A DNA stretch of 64,000 bases from Macrostomum lignano (Eukaryota). Every line of letters begins with the position of its first letter. Within the stretch, counting starts at the first letter, position 1. Location: positions 62,001 to 126,000 of the forward strand of contig NIVC01002803.1 of NCBI GenBank assembly GCA_002269645.1, written 5' to 3'. Both the position numbers and the translations under genes were made by a program. The notes beneath the pieces are model-generated. The model did no database searches. It was not told the origin of the DNA and worked only from the letters and a program-made list of their open reading frames with translations. Below are positions 3,138-58,104 of the stretch, piece after piece.

Positions 3138-6100
3138 AGTCTGGAGGTTCGAACGGTCGATGCGATCGAATCTGTTGGCCTCGCCCTGGATCGGCTGATT
3201 TTGTCTGGCAACTTTTCTGGCGCCGCCCTGCTGAGCAACGCTAGCTGCTCCCCAGCTGCCCCAGCCCCACTCACTGGTCCACGGGCAGGCTGCTGTACCG
3301 TGAACTGGCTGGGGTTAGGACTGGCTGAACTTTAATTATGGGTGTAGCTGCTTGACCAGATTTTTAGGCGATGAAAAAGGAAATTTATGTTTCTAATCTT
3401 GAGGGGTCAACTGGCTGCACAGAATGGGGTGGTGGGATAGGCTATGAGAATCGGGAAGAGTTTAACTGGCTGCACAGAATGGGATAATGGGCTAGGCCAT
3501 GAGAATCGAGAGAGGTTCAACTGGCTGCACAGAATGGGGTGGTGGGATAGGCTATGAGAATCGGGAAGAGTTTAACTGGCTGCACAGAATGGGGTGGTAG
3601 GCTAGGCTATGAGAATCGGGAGGGGTTCAACTGGCTGCACAGAATGGGGTGGTGGGCTAGGCTATGAGAATCGGGAAGAGTTTAACTGGCTGCACAGAAT
3701 GGGGTGGTAGGCTAGGCTATGAGAATCGGGAGGGGTTCAACTGGCTGCACAGAATGGGGTGGTGGGCTAGGCTATGAGAATCGGGAAGAGTTTAACTGGC
3801 TGCACAGAATGGGATAATGGGCTAGGCCATGAGAATCGGGAGAGGTTCAACTGGCTGCACAGAATGGGGTGGTGGGATAGGCTATGAGAATCGGGAAGAG
3901 TTTAACTGGCTGCACAGAATGGGATAATGGGCTAGGCCATGAGAATCGGGAGAGGTTCAACTGGCTGCACAGAATGGGGTGGTGGGATAGGCTATGAGAA
4001 TCGGGAAGAGTTTAACTGGCTGCACAGAATGGGATAATGGGCTAGGCCATGAGAATCGAGAGAGGTTCAACTGGCTGCACAGAATGGGGTGGTAGGCTAG
4101 GCTATGAGAATCGGGAGAGGTTCAACTGGCTGCACAGAATGGGGTGGTGGGCTAGGCTATGAGAATCGGGAAGAGTTTAACTGGCTGCACAGAATGGGAT
4201 AATGGGCTAGGCTATGAGAATCGGGAGAGGTTCAGCTGGCTGCACACAATGGGGTGGTAGGCTAGGCTATGAGAATCGGGAGGGGTTCAACTGGCTGCAC
4301 ACAATGGGGTGGTAGGCTAGGCTATGAGAATCGGGAGGGGTTCAACTGGCTGCACAGAATGGGGTGGTGGGCTAGGCTATGAGAATCGGGAGAGGTTCAG
4401 CTGGCTGCACACAATGGGGTGGTAGGCTAGGCTATGAGAATCGGGGGGGGGGTTCAACTGGCTGCACAGAATGGGGTGGTGGGCTAGGCTATGAGAATCG
4501 GGAGAGGTTCAACTGGCTGCACAGAATGGGGTGGTGGGCTAGGCTATGAGAATCGGGAGGGGTTCAACTGGCTGCACACAATGGGCTGGTGGTGCCCGAC
4601 AAAAGACTGATCAGCCAGTAAGAGAGAGAGCTAGGATGCTAATGCACCAGAGTCCGTTTCAACAGGGACAGGGGATGAATTCCTCTACTCATCTTCTCCT
4701 AGATTCGCAACTACCCTACCGTGCGCGGCCCCATCTCCTTCAACGCTACGACGCGCCATTTCGACAGCCAATACGGCATCGACTTGTACGCCACCTACAA
4801 CCTGAGGCGAAGCGAGCCGCTGCACTTTGTGCGCTCTGGTAGATTTGATCGCCGAAACGCGGCGGGCGGGCTGACCGACCTGTACCGGCTCAGGGGCAAG
4901 CCGGTGGCTTTTCCCAACACCTTCACCGGGTTCAAGAATGACACCCTGCTGCTGTGTACTATGGATGTGAGGCTCGACTCGCTGTCTTTCACCGAGCACC
5001 GAATGTTTTGACACCCTACTGGTTTTTCTGACACCCTACTGATGATTCTGACACCCTACTGGTGTTTTTGATATCCTACTGATGATTCTGACACCCTACT
5101 GGTGTTCCTGACACCCTACTGATGATTCTGACACCCTACTGGTGTTCCTGACACCCTACTGATGATTCTGACACCCTACTGGTGTTCTTGACACCCTACT
5201 GATGATTCTGACACCCTACTGGTGTTTTTGATATCCTACTGATGATTCTGACACCCTACTGATCTGATGTTCCTGACACCCTACTGATGATTTCGACACC
5301 CTACTGATGTTTTTGACACCCTACTGATGATTCTGACACCCTATTGGTGTTCTTGACACCCTACTGATGATTCTGACACCCTACTGGTGTTCCTGACACC
5401 CTACTGATGATTCTGACACCCTGCTGATGTTTTTGACACCCTACTGATGATTCTGACACCCTACTGATGTGATGTTCCTGACACCCTACTGATGATTCTA
5501 ACACCCTACTGATGTGATGTTCCTGACACCCTACTGATGATTCTGACACCCTACTGATGATTCTGACACCCTACTGATGTGATGTTCCTGACACCCTACT
5601 GATGTGATGTTCCTGACACCCTACTGGTGTTCCTGACACCCTACTGATGATTCTGACACCCTGCTGATGTGATGTTCCTGACACCCTACTGATGATTCTG
5701 ACACCCTACTGATGTGATGTTCCTGACACCCTACTGATGATTCTGACACCCTACTGATGTGATGTTCCTGACACCCTACTGATGATTCTGACACCCTACT
5801 GATGATTCTGACACCCTACTGATGTGATGTTCCTGACACCCTACTGATGATTCTGACACCCTACTGGTGTTCCTGACACCCTACTGATGATTCTGACACC
5901 CTGCTGATGTGATGTTCCTGACACCCTACTGATGATTCTGACACCCTACTGATGTGATGTTCCTGACACCCTACTGATGATTCTGACACCCTACTGATGT
6001 GATGTTCCTGACACCCTACTGATGATTCTGACACCCTACTGATGATTCTGACACCCTACTGATGTGATGTTCCTGACACCCTACTGATGTGATGTTCCTG

Positions 6101-9100
6101 ACACCCTACTGATGTGATGTTCCTGACACCCTACTGGTGTTCCTGACACCCTACTGATGATTCTGACACCCTGCTGATGTTTTTGACACCCTACTGATGA
6201 TTCTGACACCCTACTGATGTGATGTTCCTGACACCCTACTGATGATTCTGACACCCTACTGATGTGATGTTCCTGACACCCTACTGATGATTCTGACACC
6301 CTACTGGTGTTCCTGACACCCTACTGATGATTCTGACACCCTGCTGATGTTTTTGACACCCTACTGATGATTCTGACACCCTACTGATGTGATGTTCCTG
6401 ACACCCTACTGATGATTCTGACACCCTACTGATGTGATGTTCCTGACACCCTACTGATGATTCTGACACCCTGCTGATGTGATGTTCCTGACACCCTACT
6501 GATGATTCTGACACCCTACTGATGTGATGTTCCTGACACCCTACTGATGATTCTGACACCCTACTGATGTGATGTTCCTGACACCCTACTGATGATTCTG
6601 ACACCCTACTGATGATTCTGACACCCTACTGATGTGATGTTCCTGACACCCTACTGATGATTCTGACACCCTACTGGTGTTCCTGACACCCTACTGATGA
6701 TTCTGACACCCTGCTGATGTGATGTTCCTGACACCCTACTGATGATTCTGACACCCTACTGATGTGATGTTCCTGACACCCTACTGATGATTCTGACACC
6801 CTACTGATGTGATGTTCCTGACACCCTACTGATGATTCTGACACCCTACTGATGATTCTGACACCCTACTGATGTGATGTTCCTGACATTTTCTTGATAC
6901 TTATATACTTTTCCTGAAACTCTCCTGATTTTCCCGACAATTTCAGTTTCAGCCATTCGTCAAGGTCACGAAGGTGTACCCGAACAACACCGTAGAGATC
7001 ACGGGGATGGTTCTGGAACTTCTGGAATATTTGAAGGAGAAGATGGAGTTCAAGTGAGCCCGGCTAAGAAGAGATTGAAAAGCAGTGTCACAACGATATT
7101 AGAAACATTCCATGACCATTTCAGCTACATATTGAAGCAGTCAGATGACGGCCTCTGGGGCAACGTCGAGGACGGGCAGACCTACGCTTCAGGCTGCATT
7201 GGAGAGGTTCAGAACCAGGTGATGGTTGCTCCTGTGTGCTTACCTGCCAAACATTGAGATTGAGGTGGAGGTTGAGATTGAGATTTAGATTGAGATTGAG
7301 ATTGAGATTGAGATTGAGATTGAGATTGAGATTGAGGTTGAGATTGGGATTGAGGTTGAGATTGGGATTGAGATTGAGATTGAGATTGAGATTGAGATTG
7401 AGATTGAGATTGAGATTGAGATTGGGATTGAGATTGAGATTGAGATTGAGATTGAGATTGAGACTGAGGTTGAGATTGGGATTGAGATTGAGATTGAGAT
7501 TGAGATTGAGATTGAGATTGAGATCAAGATTAAGATTGAGACTGAAAATGAGATTTAGGGTGAGGTTGAGATTAAGATTGAGATTTAGATTGAAAATGAG
7601 ATTGAGGTTGAGATTGAGATTGAGATTAATTGCTGGATAGATGCTGGATAGATGCTGGATAGATGCTAGATAGATGCTGAATAGATCTGGCATTCATCTG
7701 ATAAAGACCTGGCATAGAGTCTGGCATAGAGTCTGGCATAAAGTCTGGCATAGAGTCTGATATACTAGTAGAGTCTGCCATAGAGTCTGGCATAGAGTCT
7801 GGCATAGAGTCTGGCATAGAGTCTGGCATAGAGTCTGGCATAGAGTCTGGCATAGAGTCTGGCATAGAGTCTAGCGTAGATCTGGCATAGAGTCTAGCAT
7901 AGAGTCTGGCATCGAGTCTAGCGTAGAGTCTGGCATAGAGTCTGGCATAGAGTCTAGCGTAGAGTCTGGCATAGAGTCTGGCATAGAGTCTAGCGTAGAG
8001 TCTGGCATAGAGTCTGGCATAGAGTCTGGCACAGAGTTTTGGCATAGAGTCTGGCACCGAGTCTGGCATAGAGTCTAGCGTAGATCTGGTATAGAGTCTG
8101 GCATAGAGTCTGGCATAGAGTCTGGCATAGAGTCTGGCACCGAGTCTGGCATAGAGTCTAGCGTAGATCTGGCATAGAGTCTGGCATAGAGTCTGGCATA
8201 GAGTCTGGCATAGAGTCTGGCATAGAGTCTGGCATAGAGTCTGGCATAGAGTCTGGCATAGAGTCTGGCATAGAGTCTGGCATAGAGTCTGGCATAGAGT
8301 CTGGCATAGAGTCTGGCATAGAGTCTGGCATAGAGTCTGGCATAGAGTCTGGCATAGAGTCTGGCATAGAGTCTGGCATAGAGTCTGGCATAGAGTCTGG
8401 CATAGAGTCTGGCATAGAGTCTGGCATAGAGTCTGGCATAGAGTCTGGCATAGAGTTCGCATCGCTCCGCAGTCGGTGGTGTTCGGCGCCACTACGTTCA
8501 CCAAGTCGGCCTCTCGCTCCCGCGTGGTGGACTTCGGCTACACCCTGTTCGAGGACGCCTTCACCCTGCTGCTGCCGCGGCCGGCCCCGGCCAGCAAGCT
8601 GTGGAACATCTTCTCGCCGCTTCACCCGGAGACCTGGCTGGCAGTTCTGGCAGCTCTCGCGGTAGCCTCACTGACAATCTTCGCCCTGGCCTACTTCAGC
8701 CCGTTCTCGGCTTGGAATCTGCAACTGGAGTTCGCCATCGCCGACGAGGTGTGGCTGCAGGAGTACATCTGGAGCTGCATAGGCAGCTTCCTGCAGCAGG
8801 GCCAGGACTTTTATCCCTACGCAATGTCACCTCGGGCAGTGATGGTCTTCTGGTGGCTGTTCACCGTGATCATCTATGGAGCTTACACCGGTGAGTGAAG
8901 GGAGCTGACAGCACACCGGTGAGTGAAGGGAGCTGACAGTACACCGGTGAGTGAAGGGAGCTGACAGCACACCGGTGAGTGACTGAAGGGAACTGACAGC
9001 ACACCGGTGAGTGAAGGGAGCTGACAGCACACCGGTGAGTGAAGGGAGCTGACAGCACACCGGTGAGTGAAGGGAGCTGACAGCACACCGGTGAGTGAAG

Positions 9101-12100
9101 GGAGCTGACAGCAGACCGGTGAGTGAAGGGAGCTGACAGCACACCGGTGAGTGACTGAAGGGAACTGACAGCACACCGGTGAGTGAAGGGAGCTGAAAGC
9201 ACACCGGTGAGTGACTGAAGGGAGCTGACAGCACACCGGAGAATGAGTGAAGGGAGCTGACAGCACACCGGAGAATGAGTGAAGGGAGCTGACAGCACAC
9301 CGGAGAATGAGTGAAGGGAGCTGACAGCACACCGGAGAATGAGTGAAGGGAGCTGACAGCACACCGGAGAATGAGTGAAGGGAGCTGACAGCACACCGGA
9401 GAATGAGTGAAGGGAGCTGACAGCACACCGGAGAATAAGTGAAGGGAGCTGACAGCACACCGGAGAATGAGTGAAGGGAGCTGACAGCACACCGGAGAAT
9501 GGGTGAAGGGAGCTGACAGCACACCGATGAGTGACTGAAGGGAACTGACAGCACACCGGAGAATGAGTGAAGGGAGCTGACAGCACACCGGAGAATGAGT
9601 GAAGGGAGCTGACAGCACACCGGAGAATAAGTGAAGGGAGCTGACAGCACACCGGAGAATGAGTGAAGGGAGCTGACAGCACACCGGAGAATGGGTGAAG
9701 GGAGCTGACAGCACACCGATGAGTGACTGAAGGGAACTGACAGCACACCGGAGAATGAGTGAAGGGAGCTGACAGCACACCGGAGAATGAGTGAAGGGAG
9801 CTGACAGCACACCGGAGAATGAGTGAAGGGAGCTGACAGCACACCGGAGAATGAGTGAAGGGAGCTGACAGCACACCGGAGAATGAGTGAAGGGAGCTGA
9901 CAGCACACCGGAGAATGAGTGAAGGGAGCTGACAGCACACCGATGAGTGACTGAAGGGAACTGACAGCACACCGGAGAATGAGTGAAGGGAGCTGACAGC
10001 ACACCGGAGAATGAGTGAAGGGAGCTGACAGCACACCGATGAGTGACTGAAGGGAGCTGACAGCACACCGGAGAATGAGTGAAGGGAGCTGACAGCACAC
10101 CGGAGAATGAGTGAAGGGAGCTGACAGCACACCGGAGAATAAGTGAAGGGAGCTGACAGCACACCGGAGAATGAGTGAAGGGAGCTGACAGCACACCGGA
10201 GAATGGGTGAAGGGAGCTGACAGCACACCGATGAGTGACTGAAGGGAACTGACAGCACACCGGAGAATGAGTGAAGGGAGCTGACAGCACACCGGAGAAT
10301 GAGTGAAGGGAGCTGACAGCACACCGGAGAATGAGTGAAGGGAGCTGACAGCACACCGGAGAATGAGTGAAGGGAGCTGACAGCACACCGGAGAATAAGT
10401 GAAGGGAGCTGACAGCACACCGGAGAATGAGTGAAGGGAGCTGACAGCACACCGGAGAATGGGTGAAGGGAGCTGACAGCACACCGATGAGTGACTGAAG
10501 GGAACTGACAGCACACCGGAGAATGAGTGAAGGGAGCTGACAGCACACCGGAGAATGAGTGAAGGGAGCTGACAGCACACCGGAGAATGAGTGAAGGGAG
10601 CTGACAGCACACCGGAGAATGAGTGAAGGGAGCTGACAGCACACCGGAGAATGAGTGAAGGGAGCTGACAGCACACCGGAGAATGAGTGAAGGGAGCTGA
10701 CAGCACACCGGAGAATGAGTGAAGGGAGCTGACAGCACACCGATGAGTGACTGAAGGGAACTGACAGCACACCGGAGAATGAGTGAAGGGAGCTGACAGC
10801 ACACCGGAGAATGAGTGAAGGGAGCTGACAGCACACCGATGAGTGACTGAAGGGAGCTGACAGCACACCGGAGAATGAGTGAAGGGAGCTGACAGCACAC
10901 CGGAGAATGAGTGAAGGGAGCTGACAGCACACCGGAGAATGAGTGAAGGGAGCTGACAGCACACCGGAGAATGATAGGTTACGCGGACTGAACATTAAGT
11001 CACCGGGAAATGTTTTCTAATTATTGCTAAGCTGTGTGGCGCCATTTTGGTTAAGCGAATAAGCAAGTGAAGGCAGTTACTCCGGCTTCCGATTGTCTAT
11101 TCAAATTGTATTTTGCCAATTTCCTGTCTGGAAAGCATTTAGCCCAGTGCTCATAGTGCATTCGCAGGCAGCTGCAAGTCAAAACGACTCTATTCATTGC
11201 GAGTTGGCTTGTGAATTTTGGGATACATCAACTGGGAGCTAAATTATTTATATCACTGTGAGAGAGGGTCGGGAAGCAGAAGTCGAGAATGGGATGACGG
11301 GAGAAGGGTTTAGATGAAGCACAGAGAGTTGATGGGTTTTAAGAGAAAAGAAATTAGGAGAGAGGGAGAGAGAAGAGAGGGTGAGAGGAGAGAGGGAAAG
11401 AGAGAGAAGGGGAGGGGGAGAGAGGGAGAGAGGAGAGGGAGAGAGGGTGAGAGGGTGAGAGGGGAAGGGAGAAAGTGAAAGAGGGACCGAGGGAGAGAGG
11501 GAGAAATCAAGGGGAGAGGAGAGAGAGAGGGGGAGAGGGGGGAAGGAGAGAGAGAGGGGGAGAGGAGATGAAGAGAGGGAGAGAGGGGGAAAGGAGAGAG
11601 AGAGAGGGGGAGAGGAGATGAAGAGAGGGAGAGAGGGGGAGAGGAGAGAGAGAGGGGGAGAGGCGATGAAGAGAGGGAAGAGGGAGAGAGGGGGAGAGGA
11701 GAGAGAGAGGGGGAGAGGCGATGAAGAGAGGGAGAGAGGGAGAGAGGAGAGAGAGAGGGGGAGAGGCAATGAAGAGAGGGAGAGAGGGAGCGAGGAGAGA
11801 GAGAGGGGAGAGGAGATGAAGAGAGGGAGAGAGGGGGAGAGGAGAGAGAGAGGGGGAGAGGAGATGAAGAGAGGGAGAGAGGGGGAGAGGAGAGAGAGAG
11901 ATGTGGAGAGGGGGAGAGGGAGAAAGGGAAAATGGACAGAGGAGAAGAGAGAGGGGGAGAGAAGGAGAGAGGAGAGGGAGAGAGGGAGAAGTAAAGAATA
12001 AGTTTGAACAGGAGAGGAAAATGGGGAAGGAGGGAGAGAGGGTGATTGGCGAGAGTTGGAAAAATCAGAGCGGGAGATGGGAAGAAGGCAGCTTCAGAGA

Positions 12101-17205: not shown

Positions 17206-17734
17206 CACATTCCCCACTGATGCATGGCCCATCCTGACCTTATCCGTCTCAATCCTCATTATCCCAAAGTCCAAGGACAACGGAGTCCATGCCAGTCAGG
17301 CGGTCAGCAGCGGCTACTCAGCAGGCCAGGAGGTGCCGATCCAGAGTTGGCAGGTAAAAAAACAGGCCGCACACACACCTGGCTCACCCTGTCGACTGTC
17401 CTTATAGTTAATTCTATGTTCGTGCATTTCTTCCTGCCCAGAATCTGAGACTGCATCGCTTCGCAGCTTTAAAACGTCATTTCTAACTCAATAGATGCGT
17501 GCTCGCTACTTTAAATACTATCTATTGTGAATTAGCTAGATTTTAATGGCTGTTGTTATTGCAAAACCCTATAGCTTGTAGCTTGTGTCTGCCACAAGTC
17601 ACCGCGTCGCAATGCTGCACTTTATGCTTTACTCAATCTTGCGCTAAAACTATTCGGAATCTTACAGTTTATCTGTCACTCCAGCAACACTGTCACTGCT
17701 ATCACTACCATGGTCTCTATCAAGCCCGCTATCA

Positions 17735-18225
17735 CTCCTGGCTGTCACTCCTGGCTGTCACTCCCGGCTGTCACTCCTTCTGTCACTCCTGGTTGTCACC
17801 CCTTCTGTCACTCCTGTCACTCCTAGCTGTCACTCCTGTCACTCCTAGCTGTCACTCCTGTCACTCCTTCTGTCACTCCTGGTTGTCACTCCTGGCTGTC
17901 ACTCCTGGCTGTCACTCCTGGCTGTCAATCCTGGCTGTCACTCCTGGCTGTCACTCCTGGCTGTCACTCCTGGCTGTCACTCCTGGCTGTCACTCCCGGC
18001 TGTCACTCCTTCTGTCACTCCTGGTTGTCACTCCTGGCTGTCACTCCTGGCTGTCACTCCTGGCTGTCAATCCTGGCTGTCACTCCTGGCTGTCACTCCT
18101 GGCTGTCACTCCTGGCTGTCACTTCTGACTATCACTCCTGACTGTCACTCCTGACTGTCACTCCTGACTGTCACTCCTGGCTATCACTCCTGGCTGTCAC
18201 TCCTGGCTGTCACTCCTGGCTCCTG
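17735..18225. repeat. 13-bp minisatellite (CTGTCACTCCTGG)n
   Basis: Directly visible. Confidence 0.9.
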
Positions 18226-19192
18226 GCCATCATGACTCAATGAGGAAGCCCCTCAAGCTTTGGATTGCGGGTAGCTCTCGTTCGTACTCGACGATTCTAT
18301 TTCGGATTTTTAGCGCCAACTGGTTACACGAAACAAATTTTCCTTCTGCTCTGGCATGCGCGTTGCGTTTTGTTTTAATTTCTAACAGCGTCTTTTTTTG
18401 CTAAGTTTCTTTACTATATTTGCCATGGACAATATTTGCCAAACATACTCAGAGGTCAGAGTACCGTGCTATTTGTTAGCTTGGTACTCTTTGCTTTGCA
18501 CATACTTTAAACTAATTTTATCGTGCGATGGAGCATGATGAAACTCTCATAGTGCCCGCAATTTCAAATGCTAAATCTCGTTGCGGCTTTAATTTTTGTT
18601 CTTTTTGTCTATGGCCCTGACCGTGCCCTGCAAATCCATGAGAGTTGCATCACGCTCTTTATGAGCACTAAAAATAGTGCCCGGAAAAGCGTGCTTCATC
18701 TTCTATGGTATTAATAACTCTCAGAATCCATTTCAACTTGATCTTACTGGACGTGAAAAGACTGGGTATGGAGAGGAGCCTCAACTTTAGCCATAGACAA
18801 TTGGGTATTGAATTGAGAAGCGTCATTGCGAGAGTACCAACGGAACGGCTTGACAGGAATTTGAGGGTACCCCAACAGATGTTTAATCATTAGAGGCTTC
18901 ATCAAATGTAAATTCGAAAATAACTAAGGTCAAATACACTGCAGTGAGCTGAATGCAATTACACTGAAAATGCTCTTTTGATGTAACTAGTTGATTGACA
19001 GCTGTCATTAAATAAAGAGATGTCACTCAGACTCTGCTCTCGTGAATGCAGACAAATCAAACGTTTATCCTCGGAACGGAAACACGTGCCAATCTGATGT
19101 GCATAAATTCGGAACTGCCGACTGCTCAACACAACAATCTCACATTCGACTCAATCTACACAGCTCGAAGACTCGACTCGACTCAAGCAATC

Positions 19193-19381
19193 ATGAAGTG
19201 GCAACTCGCTCTCGGACTTTTGCTGTTCGCAGCCATGGCCGTCGCCATGCCCACCCAAGAAGAGAAGGCCCAGGCCGAACGTGTGCTGGAGGAGACTCTG
19301 TCCAACCTGGACGAGTCCAGCCTGTCGCAGGAGCAGAGCCCGAAGCTGAAGAAGAAGTTCATCCATATTCATTTCGGTTAG
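19193..19381 (+). CDS. small secreted peptide precursor (62 aa): signal peptide, acidic spacer, KKK, FIHIHF-Gly-stop
   Basis: MKWQLALGLLLFAAMAVA-MPTQEEKAQAERVLEETLSNLDESSLSQEQSPKLKKKFIHIHFG*. GC-rich, C/G-ending codons in an AT-rich context; the terminal Gly is an amidation signal. Confidence 0.8.
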   Translation: MKWQLALGLLLFAAMAVAMPTQEEKAQAERVLEETLSNLDESSLSQEQSPKLKKKFIHIHFG

Positions 19382-19964
19382 ATGAGCTCTCCGCTGCATC
19401 TGAGATCGATGTCGCTTCATAGACAATGACTGACCGGATTCTGAACTCTGACTCTTGACCACATTGTTGTTTAGTGTTGAGGGTGAAATTTACACAGCTC
19501 TCTTTGCTGATCAGTTTTACCAAATATAAACAGCAAGCACAATAAGTTTAAGCACTCAGCAATGCTTCGTTAGGTTGAAATTATTTTATTTCTGCAATGC
19601 AACTCAAAAGCGATAAATTGGAGCTTATAATGGTGCAAGCTATTCATTTTAGACAACAATTTTTTTGATAAGTTGGTATTTCAAAGTTTGTTTATTCGAT
19701 AAAGTGCGAATTAAAGCACTGATCAGTTTTTGGCATAGTTTAGCTCATTATTAATGCGATCCTTAAAATTATATACTGGTAACTTCAAAGACTCCTGATA
19801 TTAGGAGCAGAGCTAATTTGTGCTTTATAAGAATGCTAAACAAAATTGTCAACAAATTAGTGAAAATGTCTGTCTAAATCCAACAGATCCCAAGTTAGAC
19901 TTAAAGATATGTCTGTAGTAAGATTTATGATTCTAAGATTGTAATTTAAGATTTAGTTTTAAAT

Positions 19965-20362
19965 GGTGGGGAGGGTGGCAGCCACTGGAGGTGGGGGAGG
20001 GTGGCAGCCACTGAAGGTGGGGAGGGCGGCAGCCACTGGAGGTGGGGAGGGTGGCAGCCACTGGAGGTGGGGAGGGTGGCAGCCACTGGAGGTGGGGAGG
20101 GTGGCAGCCACTGAAGGTGGGGAGGGTGGCAGCCACTGGAGGTGGGGAGGGCGGCAGCCACTGGAGGTGGGGAGGGTGGCAGCCACTGGAGGTGGGGGAG
20201 GGTGGCAGCCACTGGAGGTGGGGAGGGTGGCAGCCACTGGAGGTGGGGAGGGTGGCAGCCACTGGAGGTGGGGAGGGTGGCAGCCACTGAAGGTGGGGAG
20301 GGTGGCAGCCACTGGAGGTGGGGAGGGTGGCAGCCACTGGAGGTGGGGGAAGGTGGCAACTG
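19965..20362. repeat. 25-bp G-rich minisatellite (GGTGGGGAGGGTGGCAGCCACTGGA)n
   Basis: About 16 units. Confidence 0.95.
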
Positions 20363-21891: not shown

Positions 21892-29032
<7,141 letters not shown>

Positions 29033-33539: not shown

Positions 33540-34940
33540 GCATTCTCATATCTCCCTCTCTCACCTGTCTCCTCTGTCCCCCTCTCACATGTCTCTTCGG
33601 CCTCTCACCTGTCTCCTCTCTCCGCTCACATCTCTGTCTCCTCACACCCTCTCATCTCTGTCTCCTCTCCCACCCTCTCATCTCTGTCTCCTCCCACCCT
33701 CTCATCACTTTCTCCTCACACCCTCTCATCTCTGTCTCCTCCCACCCTCTCATCACTTTCTCCTCACACCCTCTCATATCTGTCTCCTCACACCCTCTCA
33801 TCTCTGTCTCCTCACACCCTCTCATCTCTGTCTCCTCCCACCCTCTCATCTCTGTCTCCTCACACCCTCTCATATCTGTCTCCTCACACCCTCTCATCTC
33901 TGTCTCCTCACACCCTCTCATCTCTGTCTCCTCACACCCTCTCATCTCTGTCTCCTCTCTCCCCTCTCATTTCTGTCTCCTCTCTCCCCTCTCATCTCTG
34001 TCTCCTCTCTCCCCTCTCATCTCTGTCTCCTCTCTACCCTCTCATCTCTGTCTCCTCTCCCACCCTCGCATCTCTGTCTCCTCTCCCACCATCTCATCTC
34101 TGTCTCCTTTCTACCCTCTCATCTCTGTCTCCTCTCCCACCATCTCATCTCTGTCTCCTCTCTACCCTCTCATCTCTGTCTCCTCTACCACCATTGCATC
34201 TCTGTCTCCTCTCCCACCCTCGCATCTCTGTCTCCTCTCCCACCCTCTCATCTCTGTCTCCTCTCTACCATCTCATCTCTGTCTCCTCTCCCACCCTCGC
34301 ATCTCTGTCTCCTCTCCCACCATCTCATCTCTGTCTCCTCTCCCACCCTCGCATCTCTGTCTCCTCTCCCACCATCTCATCTCTGTCTCCTCTCCCACCA
34401 TCTCATCTCTGTCTCCTCTCCCACCATCTCATCTCTGTCTCCTCTCCCACCATCTCATCTCTGTCTCCTCTCCCACCATCTCATCTCTGTCTCCTCTCCC
34501 ACCATCTCATCTCTGTCTCCTCTCCCACCATCTCATCTCTGTCTCCTCTCCCACCATCTCATCTCTGTCTCCTCTCCCACCCTCGCATCTCTGTCTCCTC
34601 TCCCACCATCTCATCTCTGTCTCCTCTCCCACCATCTCATCTCTGTCTCCTCTCCCACCATCTCATCTCTGTCTCCTCTCCCACCATCTCATCTCTGTCT
34701 CCTCTCCCACCATCTCATCTCTGTCTCCTCTCCCACCATCTCATCTCTGTCTCCTCTCCCACCATCTCATCTCTGTCTCCTCTCCCACCATCTCATCTCT
34801 GTCTCCTCTCCCACCATCTCATCTCTGTCTCCTCTCCCACCATCTCATCTCTGTCTCCTCTCCCACCATCTCATCTCTGTCTCCTCTCCCACCATCTCAT
34901 CTCTGTCTCCTCTCCCACCATCTCATCTCTGTCTCCTTCT
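33540..34940. repeat. 26-bp CT-rich minisatellite (CATCTCTGTCTCCTCTCCCACCATCT)n
   Basis: Degenerate at the left end, homogeneous at the right. Confidence 0.92.
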
Positions 34941-43059: not shown

Positions 43060-46000
43060 ATGCATGGCTGCCGTTGCATGGCTGATGCTCAGTCACCGAC
43101 GCCTCCACCAGCTGATGCCATCTCTAATGACCAAAATTCCAACTGTGACAGTGCGCCACCCATCAGAGATAATGCAGCCCCTGCTGCTGCTAGAGAACTT
43201 TTGGACTCCAGTCTGACTGCTCCAACAGACACAAGCATTCTGAAAGAACAATTGCCTAATACTGAAGCACAGATGGAGCCTGTCAAAGCTGATAGAGCTC
43301 AGGAAGTGGCAGACTTTGGCGGAGGTCAAAATAACATTGCTGAATCATCTATGCCTGATCGGCCAGAGCCTCAAGTTGCATCGGAGGTGTTTCAAATGGA
43401 GCAGCAAGCGTCTGGTGCTGAATTAGGAGAGGAATTCGATTCTTCTGGGCCGCCTGAGCAGCCTGCTGAGTCAAACACAGTTGAGCAGAGTACTGAATCG
43501 GCTGAGCCTACTGCTGAGTCAGTTGAGCAGTCAGCCGCGAAAATCGAGATGCCAGTTGCGTCAGTTGAGCAGTCAGCTGAGTCGGTTGAGATGCCAGCTG
43601 AGTCGGTTGAGATGCCAGCTGAGTCAGTCGAGGTGCCAACTGAGTCGGTTGAGCAGTCAGCTGAGTCGATTGAGCAATTAGCTAAGTCGGTTGAGCAGTC
43701 AGCTGAGTCGATCAAGCAGTCAGCTGAGTCGGTTGAGATGCCATCTGAGTCGGTTGAGCAGTCAGCTGAGTCGGTTGAGATGCCATCTGAGTCGGTTGAG
43801 CAGTCAGCTGAGTCGGTTGAGATGCCAGCTGAGTCCATTGAGCAGTCAGCTGAGTCAATCGAGCAGTCAGCTGAGTCAGTTGAGCAGTCAGCTGAGTCAA
43901 TTGAGCAGCCTGCTAATGCTGATTTAGTCGAACAGTCTGTTGAGTCGATTGAGCAGTCCACTGAGTCGACAGAGCAACCTGCTGAGTCGGTTGAACAGTC
44001 TATTGAATCAATTAAGCAGTCTGCTGAGTTGGAAAAAGAAGATTTAGCACCGCCAACGGTTGCCCCAGCTGCAGCAGCTCAGCCTGCTACTATGGAGACT
44101 GAGCCTTCCATCGAGCGCGGTCCGGAATTCCAGTCAGAGAAATTGCCAGAAAAGCAGCCTACTGTTCAAGACGAGACCTTAATGCCCGAGACTGCTACAG
44201 AAGACGATGCGCCCGCTCTGAATGATGGAGAAAAGCTCAATACGGAGCCGTCTGCTGCCGATGCTGTTCCGGATTCCGCATTAGAATCAACTACTGCTGC
44301 CACTGATGAAAAAACGGCGGCAGCTGAAACTACTGAATCTGGCATAGATGGCAATGACGCAAAAAAGCCAATAGTAGAGACTGAAGACTCCGCTGCGCCT
44401 AACTTGAGCGAATCTTTAGCAGCCGAGGATTCTACCGCCGTCGACACTTCGGCAATCGAGCAGGCTCGCGGCGACGATGGCGAAGGTGCCAGTTCGGCGA
44501 ACGCCGTCCCGACTGCCGACACCGGCGTCAGTTTGTTGGACACGAGCGGCGTGTCGCTAGGCGAGGCCGAGCCGCGCGACTCGGACACTGCCGAGCCCGA
44601 CCAGGCCCAGGCCGAGAAGCCGGCAGAATTGGCCGAAGAACAGCAGAAGACGCCGCAATCGTCGCTCCCGAAGGATTGGAAATCGCTTGGCACTGCTATG
44701 ACAGGCCTGGACGACATTCTGGCTAACGCCGAGAGCATCGACGTGGAACAATACGAGGCATATCACGCGCCCAGGGTGCCTCCGCGCAAGCCCATGCCGC
44801 CGCAGCCGCCGCCGCAGCAACCGCAGGTGCCCGGCATGGCAGCCGGCGGTCCAGCGGCCGTACAGCAGCAGCAGCAGCACCTGCAGCACCATCACCAACA
44901 GCATCATCACCATCAGCAGCCGCAACAGCAGCAGTCGCAGCAGCAGTCTCAATCTCACTTACAGCCGCACGAGCTGGCGGCCGCTGCTCATCAACATTTC
45001 CGACAGCCTGGGGCAGCTGCCGCCGCCGCCGCCGCGGCCGCAGTTGGGTTCCCAGCCGCTATGCAGCCGCATCACGCTGCCGCCGCCGCCCAGATGATGT
45101 ACGCGCCGCAGTTCTTCGCCGCGCCGCACATGGCCGCCGCAGCCGCCGCAGCTGCTAGCGGCGCTCCGCCGGCTGCGCATCATCACCAGCACCACCAGCA
45201 GCTGATGCAGCAGCAGCATCACCCGCAGCATCATCAGCAGCTGCATCAGTCGCAACATCCGCAGTTCCAGCACTTGCAGCAGCAGCAGCAGCTGCAACAG
45301 CCGCAGCAGCAGGTGGCAGCTCAGCCAGCTCACAAATTCATGTGCAAGCACTGCAGCAAAAGCTACGCCAGCAAATCGTCTCTCCGATCGCACGTGAAGT
45401 CCATCCATCCTCAGCAGGCCGCCGCTGCCGCACTTGAACGACAGCAGGGGAGCAGCAGCGCCGTCAGCAGCAGGCTGCGGCTTTTCATCATCAACAGCAG
45501 CAGCAGCAGCAGCGTGGCATGCAAGCCCAGGTGGCGAGTAAGACGCCCATGCCTCAGCACCCTAACATACCACAGGCTCACGCTAAGCAGCTGCCACAGC
45601 ACCATCTCCAGGCTCAGCAGCAGCATCTTCATCAGCAGCAGCAGCCGCCGCAGCTGTACCCGCAGACTCCACTGCATCAGCAGCCGCCGCCTCCACCACC
45701 GCAGCAGCAGCAGCAACAACAGCAGCAGCAACAACAGCAGCAACATAGGCTATCGAATGATTGCCCAGTGCGCAACTGTTCTCAAGTATTTAGTCGCCGT
45801 TCGCAGCTTCGACGTCACATCGCCGAGATGCACGGCAGCCGGATGGTCTGTCCGTGGCCCGGCTGCGGTAAGATGTACAGCAGCGCGTCAGCCATGGGGG
45901 CCCACACCTGCAAGCACACGGGGCTTCGGCCGCTTGCCTGCCAACTCTGCGACTATCGCTGCCGGCTGCGCCTCTGTCTGCTGCGCCACCACCGCCAGAT

Positions 46001-46219
46001 GCATCCGCAGCACCCGCTGCCGCCGCTGCTCCACGCTCTAGCCAACCGGCCAGTTCCGGACACCTTTAACGACAGCCAGTCCGCCTCGGACTCGGACGAT
46101 TCCGACGCTGCTGTTGGCGGCGGAGGCTCGTCCGGTAAAGACAACCAGCTGCCGCCTCAGCTTCATCCTTACCAGACTGCGCCCCATCAGCAGCAGCCGC
46201 CTCCGCCGCCACCGCCGCC

Positions 46220-46281
<62 letters not shown>

Positions 46282-48407
46282 CTTCTCAAGCTCAGCAAGA
46301 CGAGAATTGCCTGTACGGCTTCAGCGATTTAGATAGCAGCAACGACGCGCCGTACATTCCGCCCATTGCCGGCCAGCAGCAGCCGCCGCAGCAGCAGCAG
46401 CAGCTTCAGGCGCATCAGCAATCGGCAAGTCGGGGAGGCGGTGGCCCGCCCCACGGTGTGCCGGCGGCGCCTAAGCAGATCGACTCGCAGATTGACGGCA
46501 TAATTAGCAATCTGGAGCAGGACTCAAATCTTATCGACTTCTTAGAGGACAAGCAGCAGCAGGCCGCTAGCGCCAAGGTCGGCCACTCCATCACCGACAT
46601 TGTCACCCCGGCCTCGTCCGTGGTAGCTTCGGAGGCCGCCGTCAAGCGACGCAGCGGTGGCGGCCCGTCCACTTCGCAGCAGGCGATGAAACGGCAGCCG
46701 TCCGACTCCGCTGGCGGCACCCCGGCCAAGCACCGGCACCAGATTCCGGACCTCATCAGCAGCGTCACCCGAGATCCGCCCAGCGTTGCCGGTCAATCGG
46801 ACGCCGGCAAAGACTTCCTAGACGAGGTGCTCGAAGATATACAGAGTATTCAGGACAAGGAGCGGGTTGGCGGACGGCATAGTAAAGCAGCCTCCCAGCA
46901 ACAGGCTCAACAGGTGCAGCAGCAGCAGCAGCAGCAGCAACCGCAGCAGGAGCAGCAAGCCAAAGCTGCGGCGGCAGCTGCGGCCGCGGCTGCAGCAGAT
47001 CAGGCCAAGGCGCTGGGCTCCATTGCCGGCCTGGGCGCTCTGGGCTCGTCTTCGTCCCTATTGGCGTCCTATTATTCAGCTGGCGCCTACGGCCAGATGT
47101 TTAACAATCAGTTTAATAGGCCGAGCTTTCCCGTGCACCCTGATCACCTGCGCTCCCTGTCCGCTCTCGGCTCCAAGTACATGGACGCCGCCGGCCCGTA
47201 CGCGCAGTACGCCCAGCAGCAGGCTGGGGTTTCATCCGCCGACCCCGCCTCCGCCGTGTCCACCTCGTCAACTGTCGCACCCGGCCTACCGCCGGCCGCC
47301 GGACCATCGGCCACCGTCGCTTCGTCGACGGCTTCGTCGGCCACCTCGTCGGCTGCTGCAGCCGCAGCCGCTGCTGCCGCCGCCGCTGCCGCCGCTGGCC
47401 AGACGTCGCTGGGCCTGGCAACTCCGTGGGATGCGTACGGCACCGGCGCCGGCGCTGCCTCGGCGGCAACCTCGACTGCCAATCCGACGGCTGCGTTCGA
47501 GTATCTGCGCAACCAGCTGTCCTCGGATTCTGGTAAGGCGGCTCCCGCTCTCTGAGTCATGATCCCACACTAATCCCACACTCTGAGTCATGATCCCACA
47601 CAAATCACACACCTTAAGTCATGATCCCACACAAATCACACACCTTAAGTCATGATCCCACACAATTCCCACACTTGGAGTCATGATCCCACACTAATCT
47701 CACACTCTGAGTCATGATCCCACACAATTCCCATACTCGGAGTCATGGTCCCACACAATTACCCCACCCTGAGTCATGATCCCACACAAATCTCACACTC
47801 TGAGAATCGTTATCCCACACACTGAGAATCGAAATCCCACACACTGAAAATCAAAATCCCACACACTGAGAATCGAAATCATACACTTTGAGAATCGAAA
47901 TCCCACGCACTGAGAATCGAACTCCCACACACAATGATCCCACAACCAGAGTGACACCCATAGGATTAGCATGGAAATGCTATTTCTGATGCCAATTGCC
48001 TCCCCCCGCCCCCAGCGGCCAAGCCCGATCCCTACCGGTCGTTCGGCGACGCCTACCGAGCCTCAACGGACCTGTACAACCCGCTGCACCAGTCGCTGCC
48101 GTACAACTCCAGCCTGTACGGCGCCAGGGACCCGGGCGCCATTGGCAGCTACCCGACTGCCCCGTTCGTCCAGCCGCCCAAGCCTGGCGCGGCCGGACCC
48201 GCTGCTGCTCATCCCGGCACCGCGGCCGCCGCCGCAGCCGCCGCTTTCATGCCGCCGTCCGGTTTCTATAATCCTGCCGCCGCCGCTGCTAATGTCTACG
48301 GCGCGGCGGCTGCTGCCGGCGGCCAGTTGAGGCCGCCGCTCACCTCGGACCCGTATAGGAATCCGATGCTGCCCACCATGCCGCTGAACCACCGCTACCC
48401 GTTCTGA
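43060..48407 (+). CDS. large C2H2 zinc-finger protein with acidic repeat N-terminus and polyQ/polyA tracts (1-nt frameshift at 45447-45450)
   Basis: ORF 43060-45447 (finger CKHCSKSYASKSSLRSHVKSIH) continues in the -1 frame to a G|GTAAGG donor at 47533, with fingers CPVRNC..H..H, CPWPGCGK..HTCKH and TGLRPLACQLCDYRCR..H..H. Last exon 48016-48407 ends ...NHRYPF*. The finger cluster loosely recalls the ZFP91/ZNF653 group (unconfirmed). Confidence 0.8.
43480..44030 (+). repeat. in-frame 21-bp coding minisatellite (7-aa SAESVEQ/PAESVEM units)
   Basis: GAGTCGGTTGAGCAGTCAGCT repeated roughly 20-25 times within the open frame. Confidence 0.9.
47552..47945. repeat. intronic 32-bp then 22-bp degenerate minisatellite
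   Basis: GAGTCATGATCCCACAC... followed by GAGAATCGAAATCCCACACACT. Confidence 0.85.
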
Positions 48408-54700: not shown

Positions 54701-57700
54701 TCCGCCTCGAGGCTCAGCTGTTCGGAGGCCTCCGAGAGCAGGCGCTCGCGCAGAAGCGAGTGATAGCGCAGCATGAACGATTCCTTGTCCTCTAGCAGGC
54801 TGTAGAGCGTCATCTGACCACGCAAGGGTTGCACCTGTGCCTGTCACTTCATTTAGCAACACCCAAAACGAATAGAAATTCTAAACTTACACAAACGACA
54901 AACCCACACATCCTGCACCCACACAGAAAAAAATGAAACCCCACCCCAGCTGAAACACCACACTCGCAGACTCCCATACCAGCGGAATCCCACACTAGCG
55001 GAAACCAAGCACCAGCGGAATCCCACACTAGCAGAAACCCCACACTAGCAGAAACCCCACACTAGCAGAAACCCCACACCAGCGGAATCCCACACTAGCA
55101 GAAACCCCACACTAGCGGAAACCCCGCACCAGCGGAATCCCACACTAGCGGAAACCCCGCACCAGCGGAATCCCACAATAGCGGAAACCCCACACCAGCG
55201 GAATCCCACACTAACAGAAACCCCACACCAGCGGAATCCCACACTAGCAGAAACCCCACACCAGCGGAATCCCACACTAGCGGAAACCCCACACCAGCGG
55301 AATCCCACACTAGCAGAAACCCCACACCAGCGGAATCCCACAATAGCGGAAACCCCACACCAGCGGAATCCCACACTAGCAGAAACCCCACACCAGCGGA
55401 ATCCCACAATAGCGGAAACCCCACACCAGCGGAATCCCACACTAGCAGAAACCCCACACCAGCGGAATCCCACACTAACAGAAACCCCACACCAGCGGAA
55501 TCCCACACTAGCGGAAACCCCGCACCAGCGGAATCCCACAATAGCGGAAACCAAGCACCAGCGGAATCCCACACTAGCGGAAACCCCGCACCAGCGGAAT
55601 CCCGCACTAGCGGAAACCCCACACCAGCGGAATCCCGCACTAGCGGAAACCCCACACTAGCAGAAACCCCACACTAGCGGAAACCCCACACCAGCGGAAT
55701 CCCACACTAGCGGAAACCCCACACCAGCGGAATCCCACACTAGCGGAAACCTCGCACCAGCGGAACCCCACACTAGCGGAAACCCCGCACCTAACCGAGC
55801 ACCCAGACTGGCCCAGCAGGCGCACCAAGTCTCCCAGCGCCTCCACTGTCGCGGCGTCCAGCGCTCGCACGGCGCGCATCTGCCTGTGGAAATGGTGCGC
55901 CAGCGCCGCCGCCGGGTAGCCGCTGCCCACCGACGAGAGCGGGCCGACGCCGCCAGAGTTCAACACGTCCGCGATGCCGGCTCGGACCTGCGAGGGGGAA
56001 TATTGAAATACAGTTGGCTTCTTTAGAGCAGTTTTAGTACAAGGTTTCAATATTTCGATTTTTCTTTCTTGGCTCATCTCAGCCAATTATCTTTGCCTTA
56101 TCTATTATCGTATTTTATTTTATCTTCTTATCTCACTCTTATGTCCCGTGGAGCAGTCCCCCAGGCTTTTGGTCTGGGGGTCGCGTCATTTTATCCTAAG
56201 TGTGATCTTATCTTTTTTCATTGTTATCTTATCTGGTCTCGTTTTTTAGCTCAACGCGCATTTCATTTCATCTCATCGGGACTAAACTTGATTGCAATTT
56301 TGATTAAATTTATTCCGCCAAGTTCAAAGTTTAGAGGTCCGCCAAGCGCCCAGTCTGCTCAATCATCTGGCAGTCACGCGCGGCTCTCAGTCTCACCGTG
56401 CCCAACAGGAGACTCCTGCTGAGAGACGGCTGCTGCAGCTCGATGGTCGCCTCGATGATCGATTTGCAGTGGCGCAGCTGCGAGACGCAGGCCTCGATGT
56501 ACATTGAGGTGGCCTGAGTTGAGAAGGGCGAGTGAGACAGCGTAATGAGGTCATTACAGAGAACTTTCGCGAGAAATCTCATCTCAAATATCTACCTGAG
56601 AATCTCAACCCAAATATCTACCTGATAATCTCACCCCAAATATCTGCATGAGAATCTCACCTTAATATCTACCTGAGAATATATATAACTAAACCTGAAA
56701 TCTCACCCTAAAAATCTCATCTCAAATATCTACCTGAGAATCTCTACCCAAAATCTACCCGAGAATCTCACCTCAAAATATCTACCTGAGAATCTCATCA
56801 CAGATGTCTACCTGAGAATCTCTCCCTAAAAATTCACCTGAGAATCCTACCCGATACCCGAGAATCGTTAGTATCACACCAATCTCAACAGAATCTCAAA
56901 AGTCAAAGCGGCAACTCAACAATGGATTTGAGCGCACCTTAGCCGAATTAGGATCCAACGATCTGAATTCCTCTCTAATTCCGTCAAAAACTTGGAGCAT
57001 TTTGTCTTTAACGAATCGCCTGATGACCTCCAGAAGGTGCTCCTGCCCGCCGTCAACCATGATCATGACGCTGAAGAACAAGCTGAGCCCGTGACTGTCG
57101 CTGTCAATCAGCAGCTGCTTCACCGTCTCGCCAAGCTCAGCCAGGTGCGCCTTCACCGTCTCCTGCAGCAGGCAGCTGACTACAGCATCGCGGAAGCCGT
57201 GAACGTTGAAGCTGACGGCTAGCAGCTCCTCAGTCATCAGCCAGTCGCTGACGCTGCGAGCAACCAAGTTGGAGTCGAACGGATGCAGCTTTGGCTGGTA
57301 GAACTGCTCCAGGCAGTGCAGGTACGGCTTGACCAGCACTCTGGCCACGGTGAACTGCTCAGGAGAGTCGGCGGCGGCGTCTGCATCCTCGGTAGAGCTG
57401 CCGCCCTGCCACCGATCGTACGGGCAGATTCGATGCCCATCGGTGGCCAGGTACATCTGGAATCTTTCGTACTCTTGCAGCAGGCTCACGAACTGGTGCA
57501 CCGGCTGCAGTTCGCTGGTCTCCCAACTGCGGCCCGCGGCGTGAATCTCGTGGAAAATGGAAACAGCCACCTGCCTGGCTACGTGCTTGAGAAAATTTTC
57601 CAAGCAGACTTGGCGAATTAAATCGGCAAGACAGAGGCTGCGGTGCCCGATCAGCACGCTGTCGCTCAGCCACTGTCTCATGGGACTCAGGCAGGCTCTA

Positions 57701-58104
57701 ATTACCCGAGAAAACGTATTCAACCGATTCATAAGCTCCAGAAAGTGCTCAATCAGCAGCTGCCAACATTGAGCAGCTGTCTCATTAGACAATGCGGAGT
57801 CCAGCTGCTTTGCACTGCAGCTCATTGCGTCCAGGAGTCTTCTGCGCATTTCGTCGATGCCTAGCTTGAGCACGCGCTCAAACTGTTTCATGAATTGAAG
57901 CTGCGGGCTCTGAGCGTCGGCTGGCACTGATGAGTCGTTTGAGTCGGCGCCGCTCCACAGAGGAGCGACTTTGTGATGAGCGGCTGGGCGCGGCAGCAGC
58001 AAGTTGTGCAGCCTGCTGGCAAACTGCATGCCCTGGCGCACTGTTAGGGACTGGGGCTCCGCTAGGATGCTGTTGATTTCGTCCGTAAATTCTGTCAAAT
58101 CCAT
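51736..58104 (-). CDS. highly divergent cullin-family scaffold (847 aa, 7 exons)
   Basis: Phase-compatible exons 58104-56938, 56513-56397, 55987-55796, 54813-54466, 53591-53191, 52887-52671, 51837-51736 (2544 nt). Cullin-like motifs: LLEDKESFMLRYHSLLRERLL; HSGRRVSLVHSFGSG; QCAIVTVMKQRR (neddylation-site Lys at 52758-52760); LVAGGYV...EYIP*. Confidence 0.85.
51935..52560. repeat. 31-bp intronic minisatellite (AATTGGATTGACTAGGCTGCACAAAGACCTG)n
   Basis: About 20 units. Confidence 0.92.
53875..54415. repeat. CT-rich intronic low-complexity repeat
   Basis: CTCTCACTCTCTCCC variants. Confidence 0.85.
54965..55790. repeat. 33-bp intronic minisatellite (CCACACCAGCGGAATCCCACACTAGCAGAAACC)n
   Basis: About 25 units, beginning immediately after the donor at 55795 (minus strand). 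Confidence 0.93.
56575..56895. repeat. ~26-bp degenerate intronic minisatellite (AATCTCACC...ATATCTACCTGAG)n
   Basis: About 11 degenerate units. Confidence 0.8.

Follow-up and report, generated by a model that had tools for sequence, protein, structure and literature searches.

What is the function of a gene of 62 codons that encodes a signal peptide, an acidic pro-region and only six residues of predicted product? This question is raised by an open reading frame (ORF) at positions 19193-19381 (+ strand) of a 64,000-nucleotide stretch of the genome of the flatworm Macrostomum lignano (assembly GCA_002269645.1, contig NIVC01002803.1, positions 62,001 to 126,000 of the forward strand), which is called the window here. 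The program-made translation of the ORF is MKWQLALGLLLFAAMAVAMPTQEEKAQAERVLEETLSNLDESSLSQEQSPKLKKKFIHIHFG-stop, 62 amino acids in all. An earlier note on this DNA had described a signal peptide, an acidic pro-region, a basic KLKKK site and FIHIHFG before the stop codon, and all of these are present in the translation. It had proposed a neuropeptide, an antimicrobial peptide or a metal-binding self-assembling peptide as the product. Judged from sequence comparison, the ORF is a member of a large, lineage-restricted and tandemly amplified family of small secretory precursors. It is somewhat probable that the gene is one of the His-type genes in a new family of host-defence peptides, restricted to its lineage, whose products are secreted and amidated and act on membranes or bind metal.

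By its conservation the ORF qualifies as a functional single-exon gene, far beyond chance, since contig NIVC01000619.1 of the same assembly carries an annotated gene for exactly this protein of 62 residues, paralogs match it with E = 1e-11 to 4e-30, and the reading frame is unbroken in 13/13 aligned gene copies. The Mlig_3_7 annotation was built solely on genome-guided assembly of RNA-seq transcripts, and its transcript ends are experimentally defined (PMC5730564). Gene models for the identical or a 98%-identical protein exist at three loci of NIVC01000619.1, and as the annotation is RNA-seq-derived these models amount to transcript evidence, the presence of which the earlier note had named as a check. 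Several of the models are '5'-partial', the ORF reading in from the 5' untranslated region (5'UTR) and stopping at Gly-TAG. All family copies are colinear with their proteins in tblastn, which agrees with the single exon described before. It had also been suggested that transcripts might splice at TTC G|GTTAGA, with a donor at 19377, into a different C-terminus. This candidate was rejected. The GT in question makes up the last two positions of the Gly codon GGT, Gly-stop is found as GGT-TAG or GGT-TAA in 13/13 aligned M. lignano genomic copies, and every RNA-seq-derived model and all annotated proteins end there; therefore the GT is not used as a donor.

The propiece comprises 37 residues with KLKKK at its end (19343-19357), and contains eight acidic residues and two basic residues beyond KLKKK. 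The signal peptide cleavage site AVA|M was assigned by eye according to the -3/-1 rule. AlphaFold2 with the family alignment gave a mean predicted local distance difference test (pLDDT) score of 61, with a helix at residues 22-43 at low confidence. The model thus contains only generic helices in the signal peptide and pro-region and is uninformative for the tail.

The view that the precursor is a single copy stood within the window, as tblastn with all family members as queries found no second family copy in the 64 kb. It did not stand genome-wide: the FIHIHFG precursor is encoded at three or more additional loci, and annotated locus tags of the family number at least 42, spread over at least 12 contigs, every protein being named 'hypothetical protein' (BOX15_Mlig). 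Tandem clusters occur, with at least eight copies within about 40 kb of NIVC01000619.1. The search for relatives, proposed in the earlier note, consisted of a word-indexed search, a hidden Markov model scan through all of 1.84 billion representative proteins and a second search with a profile. It was rich in paralogs and empty of orthologs outside Macrostomum, the matches being M. lignano proteins plus one 929-nt genomic contig of the Logan collection (SRR31628392).

Within the family the signal peptide is near-invariant (MKWQLALGLLLCAALAVA), and members begin with the pattern MKWQ[LIF][AV]LGLLLCAALAVA, followed by an acidic propiece and an invariant KK. Residues 1-11 are invariant in the 15 closest members, while M1, L7, G8, L9 and L10 are invariant in the wider family. 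The window copy fits this 'MKWQ' family on the signal peptide, the acidic propiece, the KK before a Gly-ended tail and the single exon. K54 and K55 are invariant across the family and the residue ahead of them is variable (K/A/R/Q/E/I). KKKFIHIHF-amide, which had been put forward as the possible antimicrobial product, was rejected as the default product for this reason; only the KK next to the tail is invariant, so the expected product would be FIHIHF-NH2. The earlier note had recognised no known neuropeptide family, and searches of Pfam, PDB and the literature gave no match to any family: scores for the ORF, for neighbouring ORFs and for 16 family members all stayed below the Pfam cut-off (Lock_Gag1-like 14 bits against 27), a PDB profile search found nothing below E = 0.29, and nothing relevant was found in the literature on Macrostomum antimicrobial, neuropeptide or signal-peptide subjects. 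It seems that neither the family nor natural products of this kind, ultrashort linear amides with an alternating (hydrophobic-Arg/His)n sequence, have been described so far; the architecture itself is known.

Some members deviate from the common form. The Logan contig SRR31628392 carries at 541-813 a member with a 33-residue Arg/Pro-rich repeat tail of PRVRL/PRVRM units, which resembles proline-arginine-rich antimicrobial peptides; it is the sole member found beyond the NCBI annotation of M. lignano. Among the irregular gene models, P0011 (Mlig004661g1) has an internally duplicated propiece, P0034 (Mlig001477g4) has two signal/pro units fused, and the long extension at the N-terminus of P0030 (Mlig016106g1) resembles the antisense frame. 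P0037, named 'SERPIN domain-containing protein' in UniRef, looks like a misannotated frameshifted family member.

The tails behind the KK are hypervariable. Many are built on alternation with Arg: FVRVHVRF, IFRVHVRF, IFRVRVHI, IFRVRVRI, IFRVRARIHI, WLRVRARVRI, FVRVRVRL, FVRVRARIRL and FIRARVRVRL. His-alternating tails are FIHIHF of the window gene, GFHVHFH (12 distinct entries) and FHLHLP. Other members end in long cationic tails, namely FRIRIRWGRVARNVLRLL, WLLRRIRIRWRRVLRVASRVYRIYRYLPI, WRIRFRRIRIRWRRVYRVVRTAYRIYRHLPFP and WRRRRRFRWRKAIRVAGKVAKAVL, together with WRIKSACKIFRRLLHLARKCYAKK, which has two Cys, and the Arg/Pro-rich FLRVRLPRVRMPRVRLPRVRLPRLRVRFRWSKK. The charge of the long tails is +7 to +14, and over the whole family tail length spans 6 to 33 residues and tail charge +1 to +14. 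C-terminal Gly and Gly-Lys are both canonical amidation signals. Nearly all members have such an end, and it is found in 17 of the 23 distinct tails; this speaks for selection on amidation at the C-terminus and supports the processing logic of a dibasic site plus C-terminal Gly proposed before. Conservation of the motif is of a looser kind than the earlier note required: the exact FIHIHF is confined to near-identical copies, and what is kept family-wide is the alternation of a hydrophobic residue with His or Arg, followed by Gly.

Mean pairwise DNA identity was calculated by region for 13 distinct genomic copies. It was 0.91 for the signal-peptide codons, 0.78 for the propiece and 0.53 for the mature region, the lowest of the coding segments. 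The 120 nt upstream of the ATG showed 0.82 identity as against 0.51 further upstream, the 3'UTR 0.50 and the flanks 0.31-0.51. A hypervariable mature region behind a conserved prepro part (0.53 against 0.91 and 0.78) is as seen in gene families of antimicrobial peptides (AMPs). Insertions and deletions in the coding sequence are all multiples of three (3, 6, 9 or 12 nt), and the length of the mature region shifts by 6-nt, i.e. dipeptide, steps, e.g. (AGG GTT)n. The synonymous divergence (dS) of the prepro part is low, 0.03-0.15, while the 3'UTRs are about 50% diverged, and replacements cluster toward the tail. FVRVHVRF is the nearest of the Arg-type paralog tails, and GTC>ATC, CGT>CAT, GTT>ATT and one 6-nt deletion set the window tail apart from it; the 55 prepro codons of the two genes differ at 13/165 nt.

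These differences bear on whether the window copy is a gene in use or a duplicate that is decaying or not expressed, its Arg-type peptide having lost charge and one dipeptide unit. The latter is highly improbable: FIHIHF is indeed the shortest and least charged tail of the family, it can be derived from FVRVHVRF by the three point changes and the deletion, and its locus is without neighbouring paralogs and set between minisatellites, but the ORF, upstream block, Gly-stop and 3' block show no damage, at least three other loci with RNA-seq-derived gene models encode the same peptide, and His-alternating tails are carried independently by many copies of a second subfamily. This second subfamily has a different propiece, and the recurrence of His-alternating tails in it indicates, as far as sequence can, that the His class is being retained and does not stem from a single case of decay.

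Amphipathicity of the short tails is highest in a beta-strand arrangement, with a hydrophobic moment (muH) of 1.1-1.45 at 180 degrees as compared to 0.2-0.8 at 100 degrees. The alternation fraction is 0.8 for FIHIHF and 1.0 for both GFHVHFH and FHLHLP. Most paralog tails combine a charge of +3 to +14 with a high muH at 180 degrees; FIHIHF is amphipathic, and its charge is only +1 unless both His are protonated.

By analogy, the pattern of a conserved prepro part and a hypervariable mature peptide is the architecture of a host-defence peptide family. A defence function is suggested by the conserved signal peptide, the anionic propiece, the basic site, the hypervariable, cationic and amidated tail and the tandem amplification in a single lineage, and this family context favours the antimicrobial option of the earlier note. 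The signal peptide would be removed on secretion, and the acidic propiece would hold the product inert in transport. An enzyme of the prohormone-convertase type would cut behind the invariant KK, and the terminal Gly would be converted to a C-terminal amide, in the case of Gly-Lys after carboxypeptidase trimming. The products, short amphipathic peptides of beta-strand type or longer cationic ones, would be antimicrobial or cytolytic effectors with their site of action outside the cell. From the window copy FIHIHF-NH2 would be released as a His-for-Arg variant, nearly uncharged at the pH of seawater and cationic once acidified. Since it has His in place of Arg, an N-terminal X-X-His and an HxH face, its activity could be expected to be gated by pH and/or metal, so that charge, membrane activity or self-association may depend on pH and/or bound Cu, Zn or Ni. 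His is at position 3 counted from the predicted new N-terminus, and Phe-Ile-His would form an amino-terminal Cu/Ni-binding (ATCUN-type) site if the precursor is cut directly after KKK. The processing steps, the amidation, the secretion site and the antimicrobial or metal-dependent activity are what we infer from the sequence.

It should be noted that several points weigh against a defence peptide. FIHIHF-NH2 has six residues and a charge of about +1 without protonated His, which is weak for a cationic AMP at the pH of seawater. The ratio of nonsynonymous to synonymous divergence (dN/dS) in the prepro part varies from 0.1 to 3.6, and is noisy, 55 codons being too short to decide. RNA-seq reads are not assignable to the window copy, near-identical copies existing, and the identity of the window to the annotated locus is only 92-98%. 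The profile search of 1.84 billion proteins found no orthologs outside Macrostomum, other flatworms included. None of 17 family gene IDs was found in full-text literature searches, the examined supplements of M. lignano papers contained no family gene IDs, and no report on activity, peptidomics or localisation of any family member was found in papers or supplements.

Two known systems offer a parallel. Precursors of the preprodermaseptin type have a conserved signal peptide and acidic propiece, a basic site and a hypervariable cationic tail that is often amidated through Gly, and they form large multigene families. They reportedly occur in the skin of hylid and ranid frogs and are said to have been studied by Vanhoye, Nicolas and Amiche. 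This is the closest analogy, with the precursor layout and the large multigene family in common; it is not a case of homology, as no Pfam cut-off is reached and the profile search matches Macrostomum and the one Logan contig only. The frog peptides are mostly alpha-helices of 10-35 residues, whereas many products of the flatworm family would be of 6-10 residues and of the alternating beta-strand type. Hydra arminins, like similar AMP families restricted to certain taxa of early-branching animals, are orphan and lineage-specific. They combine a signal peptide with an anionic N-terminal portion and an active cationic portion at the C-terminus, which in arminins has about 30 residues. They are the second analogy, with lineage restriction, layout and diversified paralogs in common and no homology.

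For the mature peptides the nearest likenesses come from chemistry. IRIKIRIK (IK8L; Ong et al.) is a synthetic antibacterial octapeptide that forms beta-sheets. It alternates bulky hydrophobic and cationic residues over eight positions, and the predicted paralog product IFRVRVRI-NH2 is of near-identical design. IRIKIRIK is synthetic while the family is gene-encoded, and compared with that sequence the window peptide has His for Arg/Lys and six residues. The designed 7-mers IHIHIQI and IHIHIYI, which are acetylated, form Zn-dependent esterase amyloids, an activity proven in vitro only. They have in common with the predicted FIHIHF-NH2 the Ile/His alternation, the amidated C-terminus and an HxH face that within a beta-sheet could bind Zn or Cu; they differ in that FIHIHF-NH2 has a predicted free N-terminus and six residues.

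This likeness opens another explanation, in which the family makes a self-assembling structural or metal-binding material. The peptides would build beta-sheet fibrils, with Zn or Cu as a possible bridge, and would either be used in a secreted matrix (mucus, rhabdites, eggshell or adhesive, for example) or work as a natural catalytic amyloid. We consider this explanation unlikely; as a live minority reading it applies to the His class. The hydrophobic/His alternation of FIHIHF, GFHVHFH and FHLHLP and the amyloids of the designed 7-mers would fit such a material, and hydrogels are known to form from peptides that alternate Val with Lys or Arg. However, long, non-alternating and highly cationic tails of AMP character sit on the same prepro scaffold, strongly charged (XR)n 8-10-mers repel one another unless neutralised, and the designed peptides are N-acetylated 7-mers unlike FIHIHF-NH2.

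A further proposal concerns the His-type and the Arg-type products. FIHIHF-NH2, GFHVHFH-NH2 and FHLHLP-NH2 would be ultrashort natural, gene-encoded counterparts of the 'IHIH' designs, binding Cu, Zn or Ni and switching between soluble and beta-sheet forms by pH or metal, and among natural peptides the Arg-type products would be the first linear AMPs of the (hydrophobic-Arg)n-amide beta-strand type. We hold this to be rather doubtful. The proposed metal-binding sites of the His-type members are the X-X-His at the N-terminus and the HxH face. If the proposal is true, the metal or pH switching of the His-type members would give a metal-dependent antimicrobial, catalytic or material function. Host-defence peptides with comparable chemistry exist among animals: piscidins (piscidin 3 begins FIHHIF), histatin 5 and clavanins are His-rich or carry an ATCUN motif, and are helical with 22-24 residues. 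As would hold for FIHIHF-NH2, this group can be Phe/Ile/His-rich and amidated, with an X-X-His site for Cu or Ni and an activity that depends on pH or metal. Their precursors have no homology with the family, and the ATCUN site of FIHIHF-NH2 hangs on the predicted cleavage point.

A neuropeptide or hormone precursor, with FIHIHF-amide and the paralog products signalling through G protein-coupled receptors (GPCRs) or peptide-gated channels, is quite unlikely. The anatomy of a prohormone is present (signal peptide, dibasic site, C-terminal Gly), products of 6-10 residues are of typical neuropeptide size, and two paralogs (P0002, P0003) are predicted to end in -RFamide, as FVRVHVRF-NH2 and IFRVHVRF-NH2. 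Receptor-ligand systems, however, normally keep the mature peptide conserved, and here conservation is lowest in the mature region and highest in the signal and pro-regions. The spread of the tails in length and charge, the dozens of tandem paralogs and the lack of homologs from other flatworms in the profile search also stand against it, and the family context thus disfavours this option of the earlier note. The FMRFamide-like and neuropeptide F (NPF) precursors of flatworms have the signal peptide, dibasic cleavage and Gly-directed amidation in common with the family, and two of the paralog products would end in RFamide as these peptides do. Their mature sequences are conserved across flatworms, whereas the mature part of the present family is hypervariable and confined to Macrostomum. 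In addition the window peptide would end in His-Phe-amide, ...VRF-Gly being present only in two paralogs. It was observed that FVRVHVRF-NH2 and IFRVHVRF-NH2 (paralog locus L002, 10067-10258) could cross-react with anti-RFamide antibodies or RFamide receptors.

An offensive or defensive toxin, that is, cytolytic peptides directed against prey or predators and not against microbes, is improbable. The tails are cationic and amphipathic, and venom peptide families follow the same logic of conserved prepro and hypervariable mature parts. M. lignano, on the other hand, is a small diatom feeder, and to our knowledge it has no venom apparatus; a toxin also overlaps mechanistically with a host-defence peptide, and sequence alone does not separate the two.

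The locus around the gene was compared with the annotated locus on NIVC01000619.1. The two are colinear only at about 18226-19955, with 83-98% identity, and their flanks are unlike, mostly through minisatellites. From the sequence, the window locus is homeologous or paralogous to the annotated locus and not the same locus. The gene unit stops where the flanking minisatellite begins, and weaker colinear blocks extend back to 18226. Coordinates of the features are collected in Table 1.

Table 1. Features of the gene and its surroundings, numbered from the first nucleotide of the window
Feature	Position	Strand	Basis
Upstream flanking minisatellite, 13-mer x39	17728-18221	.	tandem-repeat scan
Gene unit of about 1.1 kb in common with the NIVC01000619.1 locus	18882-19955	+	blastn, 92-93% over about 1100 nt
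33-nt upstream block, candidate core promoter	19076-19108	+	almost invariant in all paralogs
Signal peptide MKWQLALGLLLFAAMAVA, 18 residues, predicted cleavage AVA|M	19193-19246	+	most conserved part of the family
Acidic pro-region MPTQEEKAQAERVLEETLSNLDESSLSQEQSP, then basic processing site KLKKK	19247-19357	+	translation, family conservation
Predicted mature peptide FIHIHF, hydrophobic/His alternating	19358-19375	+	translation
GGT Gly, predicted amide donor (19376-19378), and TAG stop (19379-19381)	19376-19381	+	
3'UTR, 3' end approximate	19382-19545	+	13-copy alignment
3'UTR conserved block GACTGACCGGATTCTGAACTCTGACTC	19428-19455	+	13-copy alignment
3'UTR conserved block TGATCAGTTTTACCAAATATAA (TGATCAGTTTTAC-CAAATATAA), in every copy	19508-19529	+	13-copy alignment
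Downstream flanking minisatellite, 25-mer x15.6	19965-20358	.	tandem-repeat scan

The 33-nt upstream block reads CCGGAAACACGTGCCAATCyGATGyGCATAAAT in the paralogs, and the window copy starts with AACGG. Inside the block are an E-box (CACGTG, 19083-19088), a CCAAT box (19089-19093) and a TATA-like element (GCATAAAT, 19101-19108); the block lies about 85-117 nt 5' of the ATG and is partly kept in the Logan contig SRR31628392 (365-423). These elements make it a candidate core promoter, with the caveat that some annotated transcript models run through the block. It may be a compact promoter specific to the cell type in which the family is expressed. In the 3'UTR, AATATAAA inside the second conserved block is likely a variant of the poly(A) signal, going by position and conservation only. 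An Rfam search of the whole window gave no hits.

The rest of the window is extraordinarily rich in minisatellites. Tandem Repeats Finder (TRF) gave 82 rows, with units of 12-66 nt repeated 20-90 times, for example at 5003-6888, 8892-10974, 23067-24798, 33601-34937 and 54940-55791, and it is from these arrays that most of the window's long 'ORFs' come, as do its strong swings of GC content and of GC skew. Two inverted-repeat arms of 314 nt each, 99% complementary and 1080 nt apart, are present at 60159-60472 and 61553-61866, and between them lies an ORF of 185 residues (60910-61467) with no Pfam match. The whole structure (60159-61866) may be a foldback or transposon-like element. At 43060-47555 (+ strand) there are long poly-Gln-rich (CAG) ORFs with single C2H2 zinc-finger matches just under the Pfam cut-off, which are probably exons of a gene for a zinc-finger transcription factor. 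An ATG-started ORF of 402 residues at 56896-58104 (- strand) has no Pfam match, and no identical annotated product was found for it.

We know of almost no characterised antimicrobial effectors in free-living flatworms. If the family does encode host-defence peptides, its large size and its expression in a species that serves as a transgenic model would provide a handle on flatworm innate immunity and on the interaction between host and microbes. The 33-bp block with its E-box, CCAAT and TATA elements could serve as a compact, cell-type-specific promoter for transgenesis in M. lignano. The alternating amidated products of 6-10 residues would converge with peptides designed by chemists, the antibacterial IRIKIRIK and the catalytic amyloid IHIHIQI, and the family would offer naturally optimised ultrashort templates. 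With its exchanges of Arg to His and its changes of length by dipeptide units, the family would form a natural series for work on structure and activity.

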